A stretch of 64,000 nucleotides of DNA from NCBI GenBank assembly GCA_951804945.1, contig OX638158.1:44888001-44952000 (forward strand). Reading direction: 5' to 3'. Under the pieces are notes generated by a model that worked only from the letters and a program-made list of their open reading frames with translations, was not told where the DNA came from and did not search any database. Source of the DNA: Podarcis cretensis. Taxonomy: Eukaryota. The position numbers were made by a program, and so were the translations under genes. Shown here piece after piece: positions 10,690 through 20,517 of the stretch (within the stretch, counting starts at the first letter, position 1; each line of letters starts with the position of its first letter).

Positions 10690-11420
10690 AGAACTATCAG
10701 GCCAAAGGCCCATTTAGTGCAAAATCCTGTACTCACAGTGACCAACCAAATGTTTATGGGAAGCCTGTGAGCAGGACCTCAACACAACAGCATTCCTCAT
10801 TCCCGTAGTTTCCAGAAACTGGTATTCAGAAGCATACTGCATCTAACCATGGAGACAGAACATAGCTATCATGGCTGGAAGCCACTGAAAGCCTATCCTC
10901 CATGAATTTGTCTAATCCTCCCTTAAAGCCATCCAGGTTGGTGACAATCACTACACCTTAAACTCTGTGCTTATATGAATGAAATCTTTCTTTTGTCTGT
11001 CCTGAATCTTCCAACATTCAGTTTCACTGGATGGCCATGGGCTCCGATACTACGAGAGGAAGAAAAACAAATCTATATTCGCTTTTCCCACAGCATGCAG
11101 GTTCTCATACACCTCTATGATGTCCCCCTTTTTTTCTAAACTAAAAGTCCCATCTTTACCTCATGGGGAAGTTATTCCAGCCCTTTGATCATTCTGGTTG
11201 TGCATTTCTCAACCTTTCCCAGTTCTACAATATGCTTTTTCAGCTCAAGCAATCAGAACCGTACACAGTATTCCAAGTCTGGCCATACCATAGATTTATG
11301 TAATGGGGTTATGATATTGAAAGTTTTCTTTTCAGTGCCCACTCCTAATAATTTATAAAATGAAATTTCATTTTTTTCACAGCTGTTGCACACTGCTTCA
11401 TCCAAATATTCATTGAGCTA
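10690..11420 (-). mobile_element. Old CR1-type LINE 3' fragment
   Basis: Degenerate CR1 ORF2 end (...AGAACCGTACACAGTATTCCAAGT = LEYCVxF on minus) and the characteristic 3'UTR. Confidence 0.7.
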
Positions 11421-13454
11421 TTCCCAAAGTCTCTTTGGGGCATGCCCTTTGCCTTAATGGTTAACAAAAAGAGAGTGAAAAACAATCATACTACACATGG
11501 ACTATTAAAGATGGTCAACACCATGATTTTATCCCTGCTTTATTTAAATTTCTGCTGCAGCTTCATAATTTCCCTTTCAGTGTTCTTTCACCCATGTTTT
11601 ACTCGAACTTATGCTGTAGCTTAAAACCAACACTTTGCCCCTTTTAGTGGGGAACTTCACTGACAGAGAATTTCCCTTAACCCCCCCCCATCATTTACTG
11701 CACATGAATTTCCTCCTTTTTCATTTCTTTGTGCCCCCCCTCCTGTTTCATGCACCCTTTAGAACCTTTAGAAAAGGCCATTGAAAACAGTTTGATGCTG
11801 GACTAGCAGTAAAAATATAGTATATAGAGATATATAAAAGTGCAGATTCATTTATTAATTTGCTTTGTCAGTGCCCCCAGCTTTCTATGCATGTGTTTTC
11901 TATTGTTAAGTGTTTTCAAAATGCAGTAAACATTTTACACACATTAACTGATTCACTTTTGGAACTTTTAAGAAACCTACAAAGGGTTTTTAAAAATCTA
12001 AAAAGTCACCGTAATGTTAACAGAATCCAGTCAGAGCCTGGAGCAGTTCCAGGCCAGGTTTGATGGAAAAGACCAGGAGCCAATGTTACAGTCCAGACAA
12101 GGAGCACGTGAACAAACTTTTATTTTCATCCAGACCTATTCTTGCAGTTTAACAGAGTCCTAAAACAGCACTTGACCTAGAACCCCTTCTCAGAAACCCC
12201 AGAAGCCCAGATTTCCTCTTCTTTCACCAGAGTTCTACTTAGTTTTAACTTAAATGGATAGTAACATATCAACTAAGGCAGGCTGTAAATTGACATAATT
12301 AAGGCAGGATAAGATTATTCACACCTAGGTCTTGAGGCTGTTGAAGTGTGCTCCAGGTTGTTCTAAATAAAATGGTTTGGTCACCACCCTTTATGTAAAG
12401 AATACATCTTCATCGTTCTGCACTCAGGCATAAGAACATAGAATTGTAGAGTTGGGACTTCCGGAGGCGGCGCGAACGGCAATGGCGGTCCTTTTCCTTT
12501 AGTGAAAGGGAACTCTGCGGAGATCGGGTCTTCCGCTACGGCGAAGCGGAGACCCGCATCTGAAACCCACAGGCAGCAAGAGCCTGTGGTCCTGGGACTC
12601 GGCGGGCGCCAGGAGCGACCCTCAAAACATTGAAAAGACCCCGTAAGGAGCCTCGGATCGTGGAGGGGGTTGCGGCGCTGTGAGTCGATCGCTACTCTGC
12701 AGAGTGAAGCCGCGCAGCTGCTGCCGGTGAGCGCTGACCTTTTTTCCTTGAAACGTTTGGAACTGAAAAGCAACAACCCGTGAGTAAGGAAGGACTTTTT
12801 AAAATTGGAGTCTAAATTAATGGAAATTTGGCTGAAAGCGGAGAGATGTTAAAAGGAAGTCCGTCTTCCGCTGCTATTTAAATTTCAAAGCAAAAAGAGC
12901 TGGAGGAGTGGAGCCACTGTAGAGGTTTTTTAAACCATCTGATTTGAGCACCCATTGAAGCTGCTTTGAGACAAAGTAAAGATTTAACTTAATTACTGGA
13001 TTTAACCTTTACTTGGACTGTGATAATCTTCTGCTATGGGAACTATAGATTTTGACTGAGAAGCCCAGGTACTTGAGCTGCCTGAACAGTAAAACTGTCA
13101 GTTTGCAGACTTGGCTATTGTGTATTTGGACTTGCAACACTTAGAGCATTTTAAGACTTGCTACTTTGAAACACCAGTTGACACTTGTCAGAAACAATGT
13201 TTTGCTGTCAATTCTAACTCTGCTAAGCACTAGCTACTGAAGGTCTATGGACATTAAATTTGACTTTATTGATTTTATTTTATTTGACTTCTTCTCTCAA
13301 GACATTGCAAGCTCCCTCTAGAGGATTCTGGACTTACAGCAGTGACATTATTCTACTTTCTCTTTCCTTTCCTCCTATACGATTGTTTACTCTTGGGCTG
13401 TAGCATTCTCATGGGAACAACTCAGCTTGACCTTGACTGTTAGATAAAGTTGGA

Positions 13455-14516
13455 ATGAGTGGCACAAGAAAAAGGGGAGCAAGAACTAGACAAACAACTT
13501 TAACCTCAGCATTACAGACACGTAGATCATCTGTACCTACTCTGCCGGTAGCAGGGGAGGAAGAAATTGTATCTACTCTGCCGTTGGCAGGGGAAGAAGA
13601 AGAAACTGAGCAGTTACAGTTAGAAGATATGGCCTCAGGAGCAACTGCTTCAATCCTAGAGAAAATTTATGAAAAATTGGAATCCTTGGATAAAAGAGTA
13701 GAATCTCTGGACAAGAAAGCGGATGAACAAACAGCTAAAATTGATCAAAATACAGCTTGTCTAAACAGAATAACTGGACAGGTGGCACAGAACGTACAAG
13801 CAATTGGGCAGTTAACTGAGGCCTCTGAAGAGAATCGTAAATTGGCTGAGGCTACCAGCCAAAAAGTTGAAAAATTAGAACAAGAGGTAAAACCATTATG
13901 TAAACAAGTTGGAGAACATCAGATGTATTTGTCTATGATAGAACTGCGGAACCGGGAAAATAATTTAAGATTAAGGTCAATACCAGAAGCTGAAGAAGAA
14001 AACCTAGCTGAGTTCCTGACCAAAGAATTTTCCAAGTTCTGGTCTATACAGGAAGAAAAGGATTTTAAAATTGTATCGGCTTTCAGACTTGGAAGATTTG
14101 CAAAGAAAGATAAGCCCAGAGATTGCTTGATAACTTTGAGATCGAAGGAGGAAAGGGACAAGATTTTGGGATTACACTACGAAAAGTCACTGGACATTTT
14201 GGATAGAAGAGCAGAAATTTACAAAGATATCCCGAAACAACTGCTGGACCTTAGATCCGCCTATCTTGAATTGGTGAGACTGTTAAGGAGTAATTCAATC
14301 ATTTTCAGGTGGGAATTTCCTCAGGGATTATCCTTCACCTTCAGAGGGAAGAAAGTCAAGATTAAAACATTTGAAGATAGAGATAAATTTTTGATTGCTT
14401 ATGGAGAGGACCTTCAGAAAGGAATCGAAACACCCTTGGGGCCTGGAGCATCTGCTGTACCTTCTCCCTTGGAACCTGAAGATCCAGAGAAAAAGATACC
14501 ACCCCCTGAGAAATAA
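13455..14516 (+). CDS. L1 ORF1p (353 aa): coiled coil, RRM and C-terminal domain (Transposase_22-like)
   Basis: Uninterrupted ORF; heptad-rich central region, then RENNLRLRSIPE...FRLGR...PRDCLITL motifs typical of L1 ORF1p. Confidence 0.9.
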   Translation: MSGTRKRGARTRQTTLTSALQTRRSSVPTLPVAGEEEIVSTLPLAGEEEETEQLQLEDMASGATASILEKIYEKLESLDKRVESLDKKADEQTAKIDQNTACLNRITGQVAQNVQAIGQLTEASEENRKLAEATSQKVEKLEQEVKPLCKQVGEHQMYLSMIELRNRENNLRLRSIPEAEEENLAEFLTKEFSKFWSIQEEKDFKIVSAFRLGRFAKKDKPRDCLITLRSKEERDKILGLHYEKSLDILDRRAEIYKDIPKQLLDLRSAYLELVRLLRSNSIIFRWEFPQGLSFTFRGKKVKIKTFEDRDKFLIAYGEDLQKGIETPLGPGASAVPSPLEPEDPEKKIPPPEK

Positions 14517-14530
14517 CAGATTTGCTCAGG

Positions 14531-15496
14531 ATGTCTCTGCAACTGTTGAGCTGGAATATTAATGGGTGCAACTCTCCGGAAAAAAGGAGGAAATTATTTC
14601 ATATATTGAAAAAAGAACAATTGGACATTATCTGCCTGCAAGAAACACATGTGACAAGGCTCCATAGAAAAGTGCTAATAAATAAAAGATTAGGCCAAGA
14701 ATTTATATCTTCGGACCGAGTGAAGAAAAGAGGAGTGGTGATCTATGCAAAGGAGAGCCTATCACCTAAATTTTTATTTAAAGATGAGCAAGGAAGAATT
14801 TTGGCAATAGAGATACATTATCAAGGAGAGAAGTTTTTGATACTAGGAATTTATGCACCAAATGAAGGGAAATCGGAATTTTATAAGAAGTTGCATGAGA
14901 ATGTCCTGGACTATCTGGACTATGACAACATCATTATGATGGGAGATATGAATGGCGTGGTATCAACCAACATGGATAAGTCACAAAATCAAAATCTTAC
15001 AAAAGATGGAAGACTACCAAAGACCTTTTTTGAACTAACTGACAACATGGACTTGATTGACATTTGGAGGACAAATAACTCCTTGGGAAGAGAAGGAACA
15101 TTCTTTTCTGAAGCCCAACTGACATGGACGAGAATCAACCAAATATGGATATCTAGAGGTCTGGCACCTAAGACTGGAAAGGTGGAAAAGGTATTTAAGT
15201 ATACCTTCCCTAAGAAACCAGAGGCCTTCCTTTTGGGCATTGTTGACCAGAGGGTGCTAAGGAATGACCGAACATTTTTTATGTATGCAACAACAGCAGC
15301 AAGGATACTCGTTGCTAAGCATTGGAAAACCCAAGATCTACCCACACTGGAAGAATGGCAGATGCAACTGATAGACTATATGGAACTGGCTGAGATGACT
15401 GGCAGAATCCGAGACCTGGGAGAGGAGACGGTGGAAGAAGATTGGAAGAAATTTAAGGACTATTTGCAAAAATATTGTAAACTGTATGAATGTTAA
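14531..15496 (+). CDS. L1 ORF2 derivative: truncated APE endonuclease fused in frame to the ORF2 C-terminal ~100 aa; RT and CCHC domains absent
   Basis: ATG at 14531, 14 nt after the ORF1 stop; SWNING, LQETH, GIYAPN and GDMN motifs, then a jump near 15185 to KVFKYTFPKKPEAFLLG...EDWKKFK, homologous to the end of ORF 19132..20448. Confidence 0.88.
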   Translation: MSLQLLSWNINGCNSPEKRRKLFHILKKEQLDIICLQETHVTRLHRKVLINKRLGQEFISSDRVKKRGVVIYAKESLSPKFLFKDEQGRILAIEIHYQGEKFLILGIYAPNEGKSEFYKKLHENVLDYLDYDNIIMMGDMNGVVSTNMDKSQNQNLTKDGRLPKTFFELTDNMDLIDIWRTNNSLGREGTFFSEAQLTWTRINQIWISRGLAPKTGKVEKVFKYTFPKKPEAFLLGIVDQRVLRNDRTFFMYATTAARILVAKHWKTQDLPTLEEWQMQLIDYMELAEMTGRIRDLGEETVEEDWKKFKDYLQKYCKLYEC

Positions 15497-15858
15497 GGAG
15501 GATGCTTGATCACAAACAACTTGGCACCATTGAATTAGATAAACTGAACTATGAAGATAAGCTAAATTTAGGAAAAAATCAACTTTTAGATAATGATTAG
15601 GCTAAACTAAAAAGTTTTAAAAAGTCAAATGAATATATCTAAAATTCAAGATATAACATTGGAAAATTAGATAAGGTGGGGACAAGGTGATAAATTGCTG
15701 AATTAATTTTTATATTTTGGAACGTAGGAGAGGGAGATGTGAGGAAGTCCAAAAAGGATAAGAAAATATGTTATGAAATGTGATATTTTTTGTATGTTTT
15801 GTTTATTATGTTATAATTTAAAAAAAACTATTAATAAATATTATATATATATATAAAA

Positions 15859-15991
15859 ATAGAACTGTAGAGTTGGAAGGAACCAAGAGGGTCAACTAGT
15901 CCCACCCTGCAATGCTGGAATCTTTTGCCTAATGTCAAACCCACAACTCTGAGATTCAGTGTCTCATACTCTACCAAATGAACTATCCCGG
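15859..15991 (-). mobile_element. tRNA-Lys-derived SINE with CR1-type 3' tail, interrupted in its tail by the L1 insertion
   Basis: Minus strand CCGGGATAGTTCATTTGGTAGAGTATGAGACACTGAATCTCAGAGTTGTGGGTTTGA resembles tRNA-Lys(CTT); tail ...GACTAGTTGACCCTCTTGGTTCCTTCCAACTCTACAGTTCTAT. Confidence 0.75.
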
Positions 15992-16318
15992 TTGTCTCCC
16001 CACACCAAACTGTCTACAACCATCAGTACTCTTATATAATAAATTATTCCAGGTCAAATCAATCTGCAAGCACTATTTCCATCAGCATCTGTATCAACAA
16101 GTTGCCAGATTCATAGGATCTGAAAATAAACACATGTCCCAGCATGCCTTTCTATAAAGTCACTCCCTCTTCTTTTTTAGCATAATTAATTATCCTATTT
16201 AGCCCATCAAGCTTTTAATGAGTGGTAACTGCTTCAGGATTGGAAAACACTTCTTTTTTTTAAGTAATCTTTATGATCCTCTTTCCCTTCAAAGCCCCCC
16301 ACCAAAAATGATGTAAGT

Positions 16319-16320
<2 letters not shown>

Positions 16321-16358
<38 letters not shown>
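16321..16358. repeat. (AC)n microsatellite
   Basis: Direct read. Confidence 0.95.
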
Positions 16359-16360
<2 letters not shown>

Positions 16361-18387
16361 TTGTCTGGGGGTGCTCACCTACACAAATAGGCACTTCAGT
16401 AAAATTTAAATTCAGTAAATCAAATAAAAATAGGCAAACAGCTAATTGGGGAAGACAAACAGTGTCTTGGAGCTTAGTTTAAAAGTACAACATGTCTGTG
16501 AGATGGGAAAGCATGTGTTGTTTTTTTAAAAAAATGGGGGGTGGGATTATTTTTTAAAAAATGCTTGACATTCTGCAAGATCCAATTCGAAATATTGCAA
16601 CAAATGACACCTCACCCCCAAAAATTAGCCTACTGAAATAGAGAAAATAGGAGTGGGACAGTATCCAGAAGTAGATTTTTGTATGGAAAGACAGTGAACT
16701 TTGCTCAGTTCTGGAACTCAGAAAAAATCCATGGCTCCAGAATTCTTTCATTCTAGGTGCTTGTCTTATATACTAGGCTTCAGTAAAATCTTTCTTTCTG
16801 ATTTTTTTAAAAAAGTAGATTCTACAAGCCTGAAGTCTGCCCACCTCCCTTCCAGTCCTTTACCGAGAAATGAATATGGCATAATGACAGTTGTATGCAT
16901 ATAACCTTTGTAGATTAGATCAACTGAATATTGGCCACAAACTATCTAGAGTCTAGCTACCTAGATTCCAGACTATTTTCATACATGTTATAAAGTAGTA
17001 TGAAAACCTGCCAGTCAGAGATGACAGCTTCAAAACACCTATTTCATCACTACACATTTCTTTGATAAAGGAAAGCTACAGCAGTATCTTTAAAGAAAAG
17101 AAAAAGAAAAGTGTTTCTGTTATCATGGTTTTCAGTAAGTTTTCAGTACAATCACAATCCATTATTATTTTTTAGATAAGGGCATGATTATTTTGACCTT
17201 TTCCTACAAAGGAGAGTAGGAATCTTTTCATGTTATTCTAGTTCAAATAAGTAGGAGGTTATTGTAAAGGTTGTCTGATGAATGTTCTTCACAAAGTTCT
17301 ATATAATTTACTAGAATTTTATGTCTGAGCCTTTCTCAACATTTCTATAGATCGCACTTTCTTTACCAATGCCTCTCTGGTGTGCTTACTTCATTGAAAT
17401 CATGTGCAATTTCTCTAATTATCAGAAATATTTACTGAAAAGTCATGTTGGCAACAAAAGAAGGTAGAAGCTCATTTTATCAAAAAATAATATTTATCCT
17501 ATGCATAGAATTGTTGCAAGATATAAATATCTAATATTGGTGACTAACTTTTCTTTGTTATTTTTGTTTGTTCAGAATATGGAGGGTGGTTTTAGAGTAT
17601 TGTCTGAAACTTCGTTTATCAGGACATGAATTTGGGTCCATTTGTGCTTGCAAAAAACATGCATTCTAGAATACATGGGCATATAGCTTAGTCGTTTTCT
17701 AGCAGGCAAACACCTTCCAGAAGTGTATGGAACAAAATGACTAGTATTTTGGATATTGGAAGGACAAATGCTTGCCGTTACATTTGATAAGCAGCTGACC
17801 TACCACTCTTCATTGTACAGGGACAACTCTGTAAACATTAGGATTGTGCATAAACTCTTAGCAACAAAGCTGTTTTTTGAATTTCCACAATCCAACCCTA
17901 CTCATCTCCCTTACAAATGTAAGATGTTACATTGTATGTAATTCATACAAAACTGTTGTTGTAGGCTTCATGAAATGTAACACTGAGAACCCTACATGTG
18001 TGTAATTAAGTTACTGCATGAGAAATATTTTACTAACCCTTTCGTGCAGCGCTTCATGATATCCATATGGTTCAGGAGGACCCCCTGACTCTCAGCATAG
18101 GCACCTGCAACCTTCCGCTCCAACCTATAGTAATTTACTCTTTGGTCAGTTGATACATGTACAGTGTAAGTGCACGCACATTTACTCAGGAGTAGCTCCC
18201 ACTATGTTCAGGGGGGCTTAATTCCTAGTAAACATACATTTAGGATTAGTGTTAAAACTACTATAAAAAACGCTGTAAGGTAAGTGTAAATATAATTTAT
18301 GCATTTTGAGTTCACTACACACTGATGCAGTGGTGTACAATACTCTCTGTTTAAAATGAATCTAGCCTTTCAAGTAGTAAACACATA

Positions 18388-18881: not shown

Positions 18882-20517
18882 TTATTATTTTTTTAATAAT
18901 TTTTATTTGTTTTTCAAACAGATAACAAAAACAATACAAAACAATATAACTTCAAACTCATCATTTCATACCCTTCTTTCTTTTGACTTCCCCATACCTC
19001 CCCATCCCTGCATCCTTGTTTGATGGTTCTTTAGCAACCCTTAGGTCCATTATCTTAATTCCCTTTCATAAAGATTCCTTTAGTTTTTTTTGATTACCGC
19101 TGCAATTCTTTACCTCTTACCCCCTGACATCTTAACATTCCTCAATTTTACAATTATTTTTAAGATATATTTTAAATTTCTTCCAGTCCTCTTCCACTGT
19201 CTCTTTCCCCTGGTCACGGATTCTGCCCGTCATCTCGGCCAGTCCCATAAAGTCAATCACCTTTGTTTGCCATTCTTCCAGAGTAGGTAGTTCTTGCGTC
19301 TTCCAATACTTTGCCAGTAGAATTCTTGCTGCTGTAGTGGCGTACATAAAGAAAATCCTATCCTTCCTTAACACCACTTGGCCAACCATGCCCAAGAGGA
19401 AAGCCTCTGGTTTCTTAGGAAAAGTCCACTTAAGGACCTTCTTAATTTCATTATAGATCATTTCCCAGAAAGCTTTAACCTTTGGGCAGGTCCACCAAAG
19501 GTGGTAGAAAGTGCCTTCAGTCTCATTACATTTCCAACACTTATTATTAGGCAAATGGTAAATTTTTGCAAGCTTGACTGGGGTCATGTACCACCGATAG
19601 ATCATTTTCATAATATTTTCTTTTAAAGCATTACATGCAGTAAATTTGATACCGGTGGTCCATAACTGTTCCCAGTCAGCAAACATAATATCATGACCAA
19701 TATCTTGTGCCCATTTAATCATTGCTGATTTCACCGTTTCATCCTGTGTATTCCATTTCAACAGCAAGTTATACATTTTTGATAAGTTCTTAGTATTGGG
19801 TTCCAACAGTTCTGTTTCTAGTTTTGACTTCTCTTTCTGAAATCCTATTTTCCTGTCCTGTTTAAATGTCTCATTTATCTGATGGTAATGCAACCAATCT
19901 CGAACCTTAGGCTTTAGTTTCTCATAACTCTGAAGTTTCACCCTTTCACCATCATATTCTAGAATCTCATGATATTTTGGCCATTTAGAGTCCATATTAA
20001 GCTTTTTTACTTCCCTGGCTTCCATTGGTGACACCCACCTGGGGGTTTTACTTTCCAGCAGATCTTTATATCTAATCCAAACATTATACAATGCTTTCCT
20101 TACAATATGGTTTTTAAAACTTTTATACACCTTTACCTTGTCATACCATAAGTATGCATGCCAACCAAAGTTATTGTTGTACCCTTCCAGGTCCAAAATG
20201 TCAGTGTTCTCAAGAAGTAGCCAGTGTTTCAACCAGCAGAAAGCTGCCGATTCATAATAAAGTCTTAAGTCCGGCAGGGCAAACCCCCCTCTATCCTTTG
20301 CATCAGTTAAGATCTTAAATTTAATTCTGGGCTTTTTGCCCTGCCAGACAAATTTTGATATATCTTTCTGCCACTTCTTGAAACAGTCCATCTTGTCCAA
20401 AATCTGCAACGTCTGGAATAAAAACAGCATTCTAGGCAATACATTCATCTTAATAGTAGCAATTCGGCCTCACAAGGAAAGTTTCAACCTTGACCATATT
20501 TCCAGATCCATATTTCC
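18882..20517 (-). mobile_element. 5'-truncated L1-clade element (ORF2 C-terminal third, 3'UTR and A-rich tail)
   Basis: 438-aa open frame 19132..20448 with GGFALPDL and the zinc knuckle CWKC...HLWWTC; AATAAA at 18902-18907 (minus strand); 10-bp TSD AGGCCTTTCA at 18872-18881 and 20518-20527. Confidence 0.93.
19132..20448 (-). pseudogene. L1 ORF2 C-terminal fragment (post-RT region, DUF1891-like and CCHC)
   Basis: Open for 438 aa; just upstream the frame reads LSL*GRIATIKMN (probable TGG>TGA); 5' part missing. Confidence 0.85.

Follow-up and report, generated by a model that had tools for sequence, protein, structure and literature searches.

The insertion and its parts

We analyzed a 64-kb stretch of Podarcis cretensis DNA (contig OX638158.1, positions 44,888,001 to 44,952,000, forward strand), called the window below, whose sequence contains no N. 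It carries a long interspersed element 1 (L1) of 3403 bp with an internal deletion. The first open reading frame (ORF1) of this element is open, and the second (ORF2) runs from an endonuclease (EN) part straight into the last 102 residues of the ORF2 protein (ORF2p). The parts of the element are listed below by their positions in the window.

12438..12455, plus strand: upstream copy of the target-site duplication (TSD), ATAGAATTGTAGAGTTGG, direct repeat family D2
12456..15858, plus strand: whole internally deleted L1, 3403 bp, bounded by both TSD copies
12456..12780, plus strand: CpG-island 5' end, presumed promoter part of the 5' untranslated region (5'UTR); G+C 0.60, CpG observed/expected ratio 1.03
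12781..13454, plus strand: remaining 5'UTR, A+T-rich and family-specific, from sequence composition and contig depth
13455..14516, plus strand: ORF1, 353 aa, open, with a coiled coil and an L1 ORF1 protein (ORF1p)-type RRM and C-terminal domain (CTD), from the ORF list and a profile search
13532..13601, plus strand: in-frame 36-nt tandem duplication in the N-terminal region of ORF1 (VPTLPVAGEEE / IVSTLPLAGEEE)
14531..15187, plus strand: ORF2 part 1, APE-type endonuclease, aa 1-219, from PF03372 and the alignment to human L1 EN
15137..15139, plus strand: AAC, Asn203 at the position of the human catalytic Asp205, from the HMMER alignment (trinqi / skidhi)
15186..15188, plus strand: deletion junction, AAA at both breakpoints (3-nt microhomology), from loose ends of parent contigs
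15188..15496, plus strand: ORF2 part 2, last 102 aa of ORF2 and the stop codon, from the nucleotide match to 19440-19131 on the minus strand
15497..15858, plus strand: 3'UTR and tail, with AATAAA at 15833-15838 and a short A8/(TA)n/A4 tail ending at 15858
15859..15876, plus strand: downstream TSD copy, ATAGAACTGTAGAGTTGG, direct repeat

The insertion signature of an L1, an 18-bp TSD together with an A-rich 3' tail, was present. The two copies of the 18-nt direct repeat, ATAGAA[T/C]TGTAGAGTTGG, match at 17 of 18 letters, and an (AT)n array at 15834-15855 lies within the 3' end of the element. This TSD, together with the complete 5' end (the CpG island) and the tailed 3'UTR, shows that the element was inserted via target-primed reverse transcription. 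The original prediction, made from the letters of this stretch, had described a 3.4-kb L1 with a CpG-rich 5' end, a 353-aa ORF1, a 3'UTR, a tail and a TSD, and we found every one of these where it had placed them.

Contigs from four public runs (X1, X3, X5 and X6) were aligned to positions 11400-16900 of the window. The four runs represent two samples of organism A, one of organism B and one of organism C, and there was no RNA run among the public runs containing the stretch. In these contig data rare variants are dropped, and summed depth is not equal to copy number. In both samples of organism A, a 5' flank contig of single-copy depth extends 25 nt inside the L1, to 12481, indicating that the insertion is not an invention of the assembly. 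In organism C, the fit of the flank contig ends exactly at 12455 and its 11 further letters differ from the element, which is compatible with an empty insertion site.

Several features point to a young insert, namely the single TSD mismatch, the retained CpG island and the small number of private letters. The CpG observed/expected ratio is 1.03 in the first 325 bp, 0.17-0.34 in the remaining element and 0.08-0.11 in the flanks. If the insert is young, open frames are to be expected without selection.

The deletion junction and the fused ORF2

The ORF2 remnant extends from the ATG at 14531 to the stop codon at 15494-15496 and encodes 321 aa without a stop or frameshift, in agreement with the predicted short ORF2 of about 320 aa. 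The ORF listing starts it at the TTG at 14522 (324 aa). The junction, expected near 15185, lies within GGAAAGGTGGAAAAGGT and could be sharpened to 15186-15188 by means of loose contig ends seen in X1, X3 and X6. On the left side, contigs that fit up to 15188 continue with TCTGCCCAAAGACCTGCT, which is the full EN (EICPKT...). On the right side, the contigs fit from 15186 onward and read ..ATGATCTATAATGAGTTGA ahead of that point, which is the full ORF2 C-terminus (MIYNEL|KKVFKY). At the breakpoints the left parent has GGAAAGGTGGAAA|TCTGCC, the right parent GAGTTGA|AAAAGGTATT and the element GGAAAGGTGGAAAAGGTATT, with AAA as the overlap. Across this 3-nt ambiguity, the deleted segment would begin with TC, AT or AA and finish with AA or GA. 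Since no register of the AAA yields GT..AG or AT..AC, the missing block was not spliced out. The choice that the original prediction had left between microhomologies and GT-AG splice sites is thereby decided for a 3-nt AAA microhomology.

The lost block comprises about 925 aa (~2.8 kb) and includes the tower, the reverse transcriptase (RT), the wrist and the CCHC motif. This size was derived from the 1049-aa relative P0074, in which the EN end falls at residue 127 and which ends with ...FWELIY, about 5 residues before the right breakpoint. It bears out the earlier estimate that roughly 2.8-3 kb had been removed in frame, and implies a parent ORF2 of about 1250 aa. A random deletion has a one-in-three chance of leaving the frame intact. 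Two relatives bracket the loss. The Podarcis protein P0001 reads on past ...KKAE with ICPKTCSDH (KKAEICPKTCSDH), and P0006 reads ...CWKC...H....C...FWEIIYNELKKVFKY ahead of the tail. Therefore, the region from the last EN strand to just past the CCHC motif is gone.

The EN part is recognizable by several comparisons. Pfam PF03372 (Exo_endo_phos) matches aa 9-221 of the remnant (E 3.6e-11), and the best Protein Data Bank (PDB) matches are human L1 EN/ORF2p (E 5e-27); the Pfam search of the 321-aa ORF found no RT family. Residues 1-219 share 79% identity with P. lilfordi P0001 (its residues 1-218) and 91% with P0002. Human L1 EN (1vyb) aligns over its residues 9-226, up to just before S228-D229-H230. 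Compared with an autonomous L1, the catalytic set is incomplete, given that the equivalents of D205 and D229/H230 are both lost. D205A and D205A/H230A are standard inactivating mutants of L1 EN (PMC4837594). With its last catalytic motif deleted and Asn at the Asp205 position, the endonuclease is predicted to be dead. The earlier claim of an EN fused in frame to the ORF2 C-terminus was thus right about the fusion, but the EN itself is not intact. The structure model of the entire fusion is confident in the EN core, but its pLDDT falls below 50 at residues 193-200 and at residues 224-245, the joint.

Position 15137 carries G, coding for Asp, in 47 X1 contigs (441,894 of a summed depth of 442,154) and in all contigs of X3, X5 and X6. 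Given that the family contigs read G here, Asn203 appears to be confined to this copy, or at most shared with a very small number of others. We compared the other letters of the element with the family contigs in the same way. Positions 14402, 14594, 15080, 15130 and 15137 differ from almost all of them, and most private letters of the window are missing from the contigs of the four runs; private changes are counted among the rows listed, a tiny sample. The change at 14402 is synonymous and is the only one in ORF1 among those listed. In the EN part, 14594 gives Leu22 where the other copies have Ile, 15080 gives Ser184 where they have a conserved Pro, and 15130 is synonymous. Hence, among the listed changes, three in the EN part alter an amino acid (L22, S184 and N203) and one is silent, a ratio that, at face value, is as expected without constraint.

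The tail (remnant residues 220-321) is the helical end of the CTD, downstream of the CCHC motif. Its protein sequence aligns with the ends of P0006, P0008 and P0010, and positions 15188-15497 are 78% identical at the nucleotide level to the only other L1 fragment in the window (19440-19131, minus strand). The dN/dS between the two is 0.10. This low value reflects selection in autonomous L1s, not in this copy. AlphaFold modeled the tail as three helices (pLDDT 78.7), whose residues 1-78 superpose on residues 1159-1239 of human ORF2p (9hdr_A) with a Z of 4.7, an rmsd of 3.1 A and 21% identity. The superposition of the model is weak, yet it is collinear with the sequence prediction; a Foldseek search with the tail model gave no significant PDB match.

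A BLAST alignment seemed to extend the tail match back into EN, pairing aa 130-220 with the CCHC region of P0006. We judged the stretch concerned (EGTFFSEAQLTWT / EGTFYHLWWTC) to be chance similarity, and retained CCHC sequence in the remnant was rejected on this ground.

The other fragment (19135-20511, minus strand) is 5'-truncated and belongs to a different L1 family, with the 78% nucleotide identity to the tail given above. An internal Met (MNVLPRMLFLFQ...) starts an open frame of 438 aa that is equal in length and 82% identical to the P. lilfordi 'hypothetical protein' P0006. Therefore, the annotated Podarcis proteins P0006, P0008 and P0009 are L1 ORF2 C-terminal fragments. In X1, the summed contig depth was 4.06 million over 15264-15447 of the tail, 0.25 million over EN and 0.02-0.11 million over ORF1. 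This excess over the tail exceeds what simple 5' truncation suggests, and the tail may be common, at 90% identity or more, to many L1 lineages or derivative families.

Origin of the deletion

We consider it probable that a one-off, microhomology-mediated internal deletion gave rise to this element, which would be one young, non-autonomous member of a multi-copy Podarcis L1 family. The deletion would have arisen once, by one of two routes. Either the reverse transcriptase skipped about 2.8 kb of its own RNA template while the element was being inserted, or the inserted DNA later lost the block through end-joining or replication slippage. The 3-nt microhomology fits both routes, between which a single copy cannot discriminate. 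The element should still be able to make ORF1p. It may also make the 321-aa EN-tail polypeptide. Without the D229/H230-equivalent motif, and with Asn in place of Asp205, this product would have no DNA-cutting activity, nor would it perform reverse transcription. Any further movement would need ORF2p in trans from an autonomous L1, and the open frames would reflect youth, not selection. Large internal deletions are a recognized decay path of L1 inserts (PMC5872511). A one-off deletion explains every feature of the element.

The junction occurs in one copy only within the 64-kb window. No contiguous EN-tail fusion protein was found in a word search of 5.8 billion protein clusters (candidates of 178-567 aa) or, with protein length unrestricted, in a HMMER search of 1.84 billion representatives. 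In metagenomes, two distant loci of 21-29% identity were all that the scan recovered.

Seven proteins with EN and a C-terminal stretch (P0053, P0063, P0068, P0077, P0086, P0088 and P0111; 457-728 aa) were examined as relatives of the fusion and rejected. They match the tail at 28-43% identity and belong to other families. The junction differs in each, several begin within ORF1, and they resemble gene models in which splicing has joined parts of decayed L1 copies. Five of them from another taxon (P0053, P0063, P0077, P0086 and P0088) join ORF1, EN and the ORF2 C-terminus without RT, and such strings call for caution in protein-level searches for RT-less L1s.

Some observations weigh against a one-off deletion. 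The search for the junction covered only the window and protein databases. The databases sample Podarcis L1s thinly, with the nearest ORF1 only 72% identical, and because they barely sample the L1s of this lizard, the lack of look-alike proteins is weak evidence. In addition, some X1 contigs lack G at 15137. Their depths sum to about 260, or five times the 53 measured in the flank, and a few copies could share the Asn variant. Finally, both ORFs are open.

These points bear on the alternative of a transposing non-autonomous deletion family, which we regard as possible but rather unlikely. A master copy would be transcribed from its own CpG-island promoter, its RNA would be coated by its own ORF1p, and autonomous L1s with a 3' end of the same type would supply the ORF2p. 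Both ends of the element are complete and its TSD is present, so the deleted form may itself have been the inserted RNA. ORF1 is intact, its sole listed private change being synonymous, and the fivefold non-G excess at 15137 in X1 would suit a few related copies. HAL1 shows that ORF1-only L1 derivatives can amplify (PMC5753468). However, no second junction appeared in the window or in either protein collection, and the one-off deletion already accounts for what was seen. None of the X3, X5 and X6 contigs has the letters that the window shows at 15080 and 15137, indicating that no abundant subfamily carries them. Moreover, ORF2p binds its own RNA co-translationally, a cis preference (PMC10830420) that disfavors the efficient spread of RT-less copies. 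The narrower proposal, a small and recently mobile family that shares the junction and has a promoter, a working ORF1p, a translated dead EN-CTD stub and borrowed ORF2p, is slightly less likely.

It is much less likely again that selection has kept the frame of the EN-tail fusion open for a function of its product, for instance as a dominant-negative or an RNA-binding helper. In favor of this, the open fusion keeps the frame, the low dN/dS of the tail shows strong conservation between L1 lineages, and in vitro RNA binding has been described for the C-terminal segment of the human protein (PMC3821027). That conservation, however, belongs to autonomous L1s and not to this copy. The frame is retained by chance in one case out of three, the joint is poorly defined in the model at aa 224-245, and the amino-acid changes private to the EN part include the catalytic Asp and the conserved Pro. 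The original prediction had suggested that the short translated ORF2 could be useful; this is weakened by an EN without its last motif, Asn at the Asp205 position and private changes that are 3:1 non-synonymous among the few listed.

An assembly artefact, in which two parts of a full-length element collapsed at the junction, has a slighter claim than selection. None of the listed contigs bridges 15187, which would suit such a collapse. Nevertheless, a match of three nucleotides falls far short of what would mislead an assembler, the junction preserves the frame, and the join between flank and element was confirmed in two independent samples. Least credible of all, and close to negligible, is a retrocopy of a spliced L1 RNA of the SpIRE type with the RT region removed as an intron. 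The clean internal loss in an otherwise complete element would fit it, but the breakpoint sequences contradict it, with no GT..AG or AT..AC within the 3-nt ambiguity.

The element has the features of an L1, with an APE-type EN, an ORF1p with coiled coil and RRM/CTD, and a TSD with a tail. It is not an autonomous L1, given that the RT domain is absent and the EN catalytic set incomplete. It is most likely a known kind of defective LINE and, as it stands, an ordinary defective L1 copy. SpIREs were reportedly described by Larson et al. in 2018 as spliced integrated retrotransposed L1 elements with splice-site junctions. Like them, the element is a retrotransposed L1 copy without an internal segment; unlike them, its junction is a 3-nt microhomology with no GT..AG. 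Internally deleted L1 inserts (PMC5872511) share with it that a 5'-complete L1 with TSD and tail has lost an internal block. For twin-priming events, internal deletions arise during insertion (bioRxiv 10.1101/2024.08.27.596794). The element of the window differs from these inserts in its large loss (~2.8 kb), the lack of an inversion, the kept frame, the two open ORFs and its apparent youth. HAL1 (half-L1) elements are mammalian non-autonomous L1 derivatives that encode only ORF1p (PMC5753468). They share with it an L1 origin, a kept ORF1 and a lost RT, and its mobility would likewise depend on ORF2p in trans. In contrast, HAL1 forms amplified families and the element of the window is known as one copy; it further retains two parts of ORF2, joined in frame, and resides in a lizard, not a mammal.

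The value of the element is descriptive, as a clean, dated case of a microhomology-mediated internal deletion that leaves both frames open. If the junction were present at several loci, it would represent a new non-autonomous L1 architecture, consisting of ORF1 and a dead EN-tail ORF. Such a family would be a bicistronic, non-autonomous 'two-thirds L1' of lizards, unlike the mammalian HAL1, and a natural system for asking how far cis preference shields L1 from its own deletion derivatives.

Target repeat, 5' region and ORF1

The target site of the L1 (12320-12455 / 15877-16000) lies inside a high-copy interspersed repeat, and contigs over 15816-15999 reach a summed depth about 130 times that of the flank. 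This repeat matched no Rfam family and has no second copy within the window. Contig joints of the type 12455 to 15905 were considered as empty-site alleles and rejected, since each has 14-40 unrelated letters between its two sides. Because of these intervening letters, the joints near 15905 derive from other copies of the interspersed repeat.

In each of the four runs, the summed contig depth of the 5' module (12456-12871) exceeds that of the neighboring 5'UTR stretch (12872-13239) roughly tenfold. Given this tenfold depth, the CpG-island 5' module is probably common to other, more abundant repeat families. Some contig joints omit 69-211 nt inside 12490-12702, which suggests length variants of the module. 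Over 12781-13454, the summed contig depth was about 90-165 times the flank depth in organism A, a value that is not a copy number.

The protein relatives recovered for the element derive from P. lilfordi, P. muralis and Logan contigs, in line with a wall-lizard origin of the window. The nearest relatives of ORF1 are proteins from Logan contigs (72% identical), along with Podarcis ORF1-like proteins. One relative carries the source name 'L1 transposable element RRM domain-containing'. By Pfam alone, ORF1 matched no L1 family. The profile built from 16 ORF1 relatives matched the L1 ORF1p chain 2ldy at positions 159-289 with a modest E of 4.9e-4, and its positions 50-144 matched coiled-coil PDB chains. 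The spacer between ORF1 and the ORF2 remnant is 14 nt. At the tandem duplication in ORF1, the family contigs vary, for example by a 3-nt deletion at 13593.

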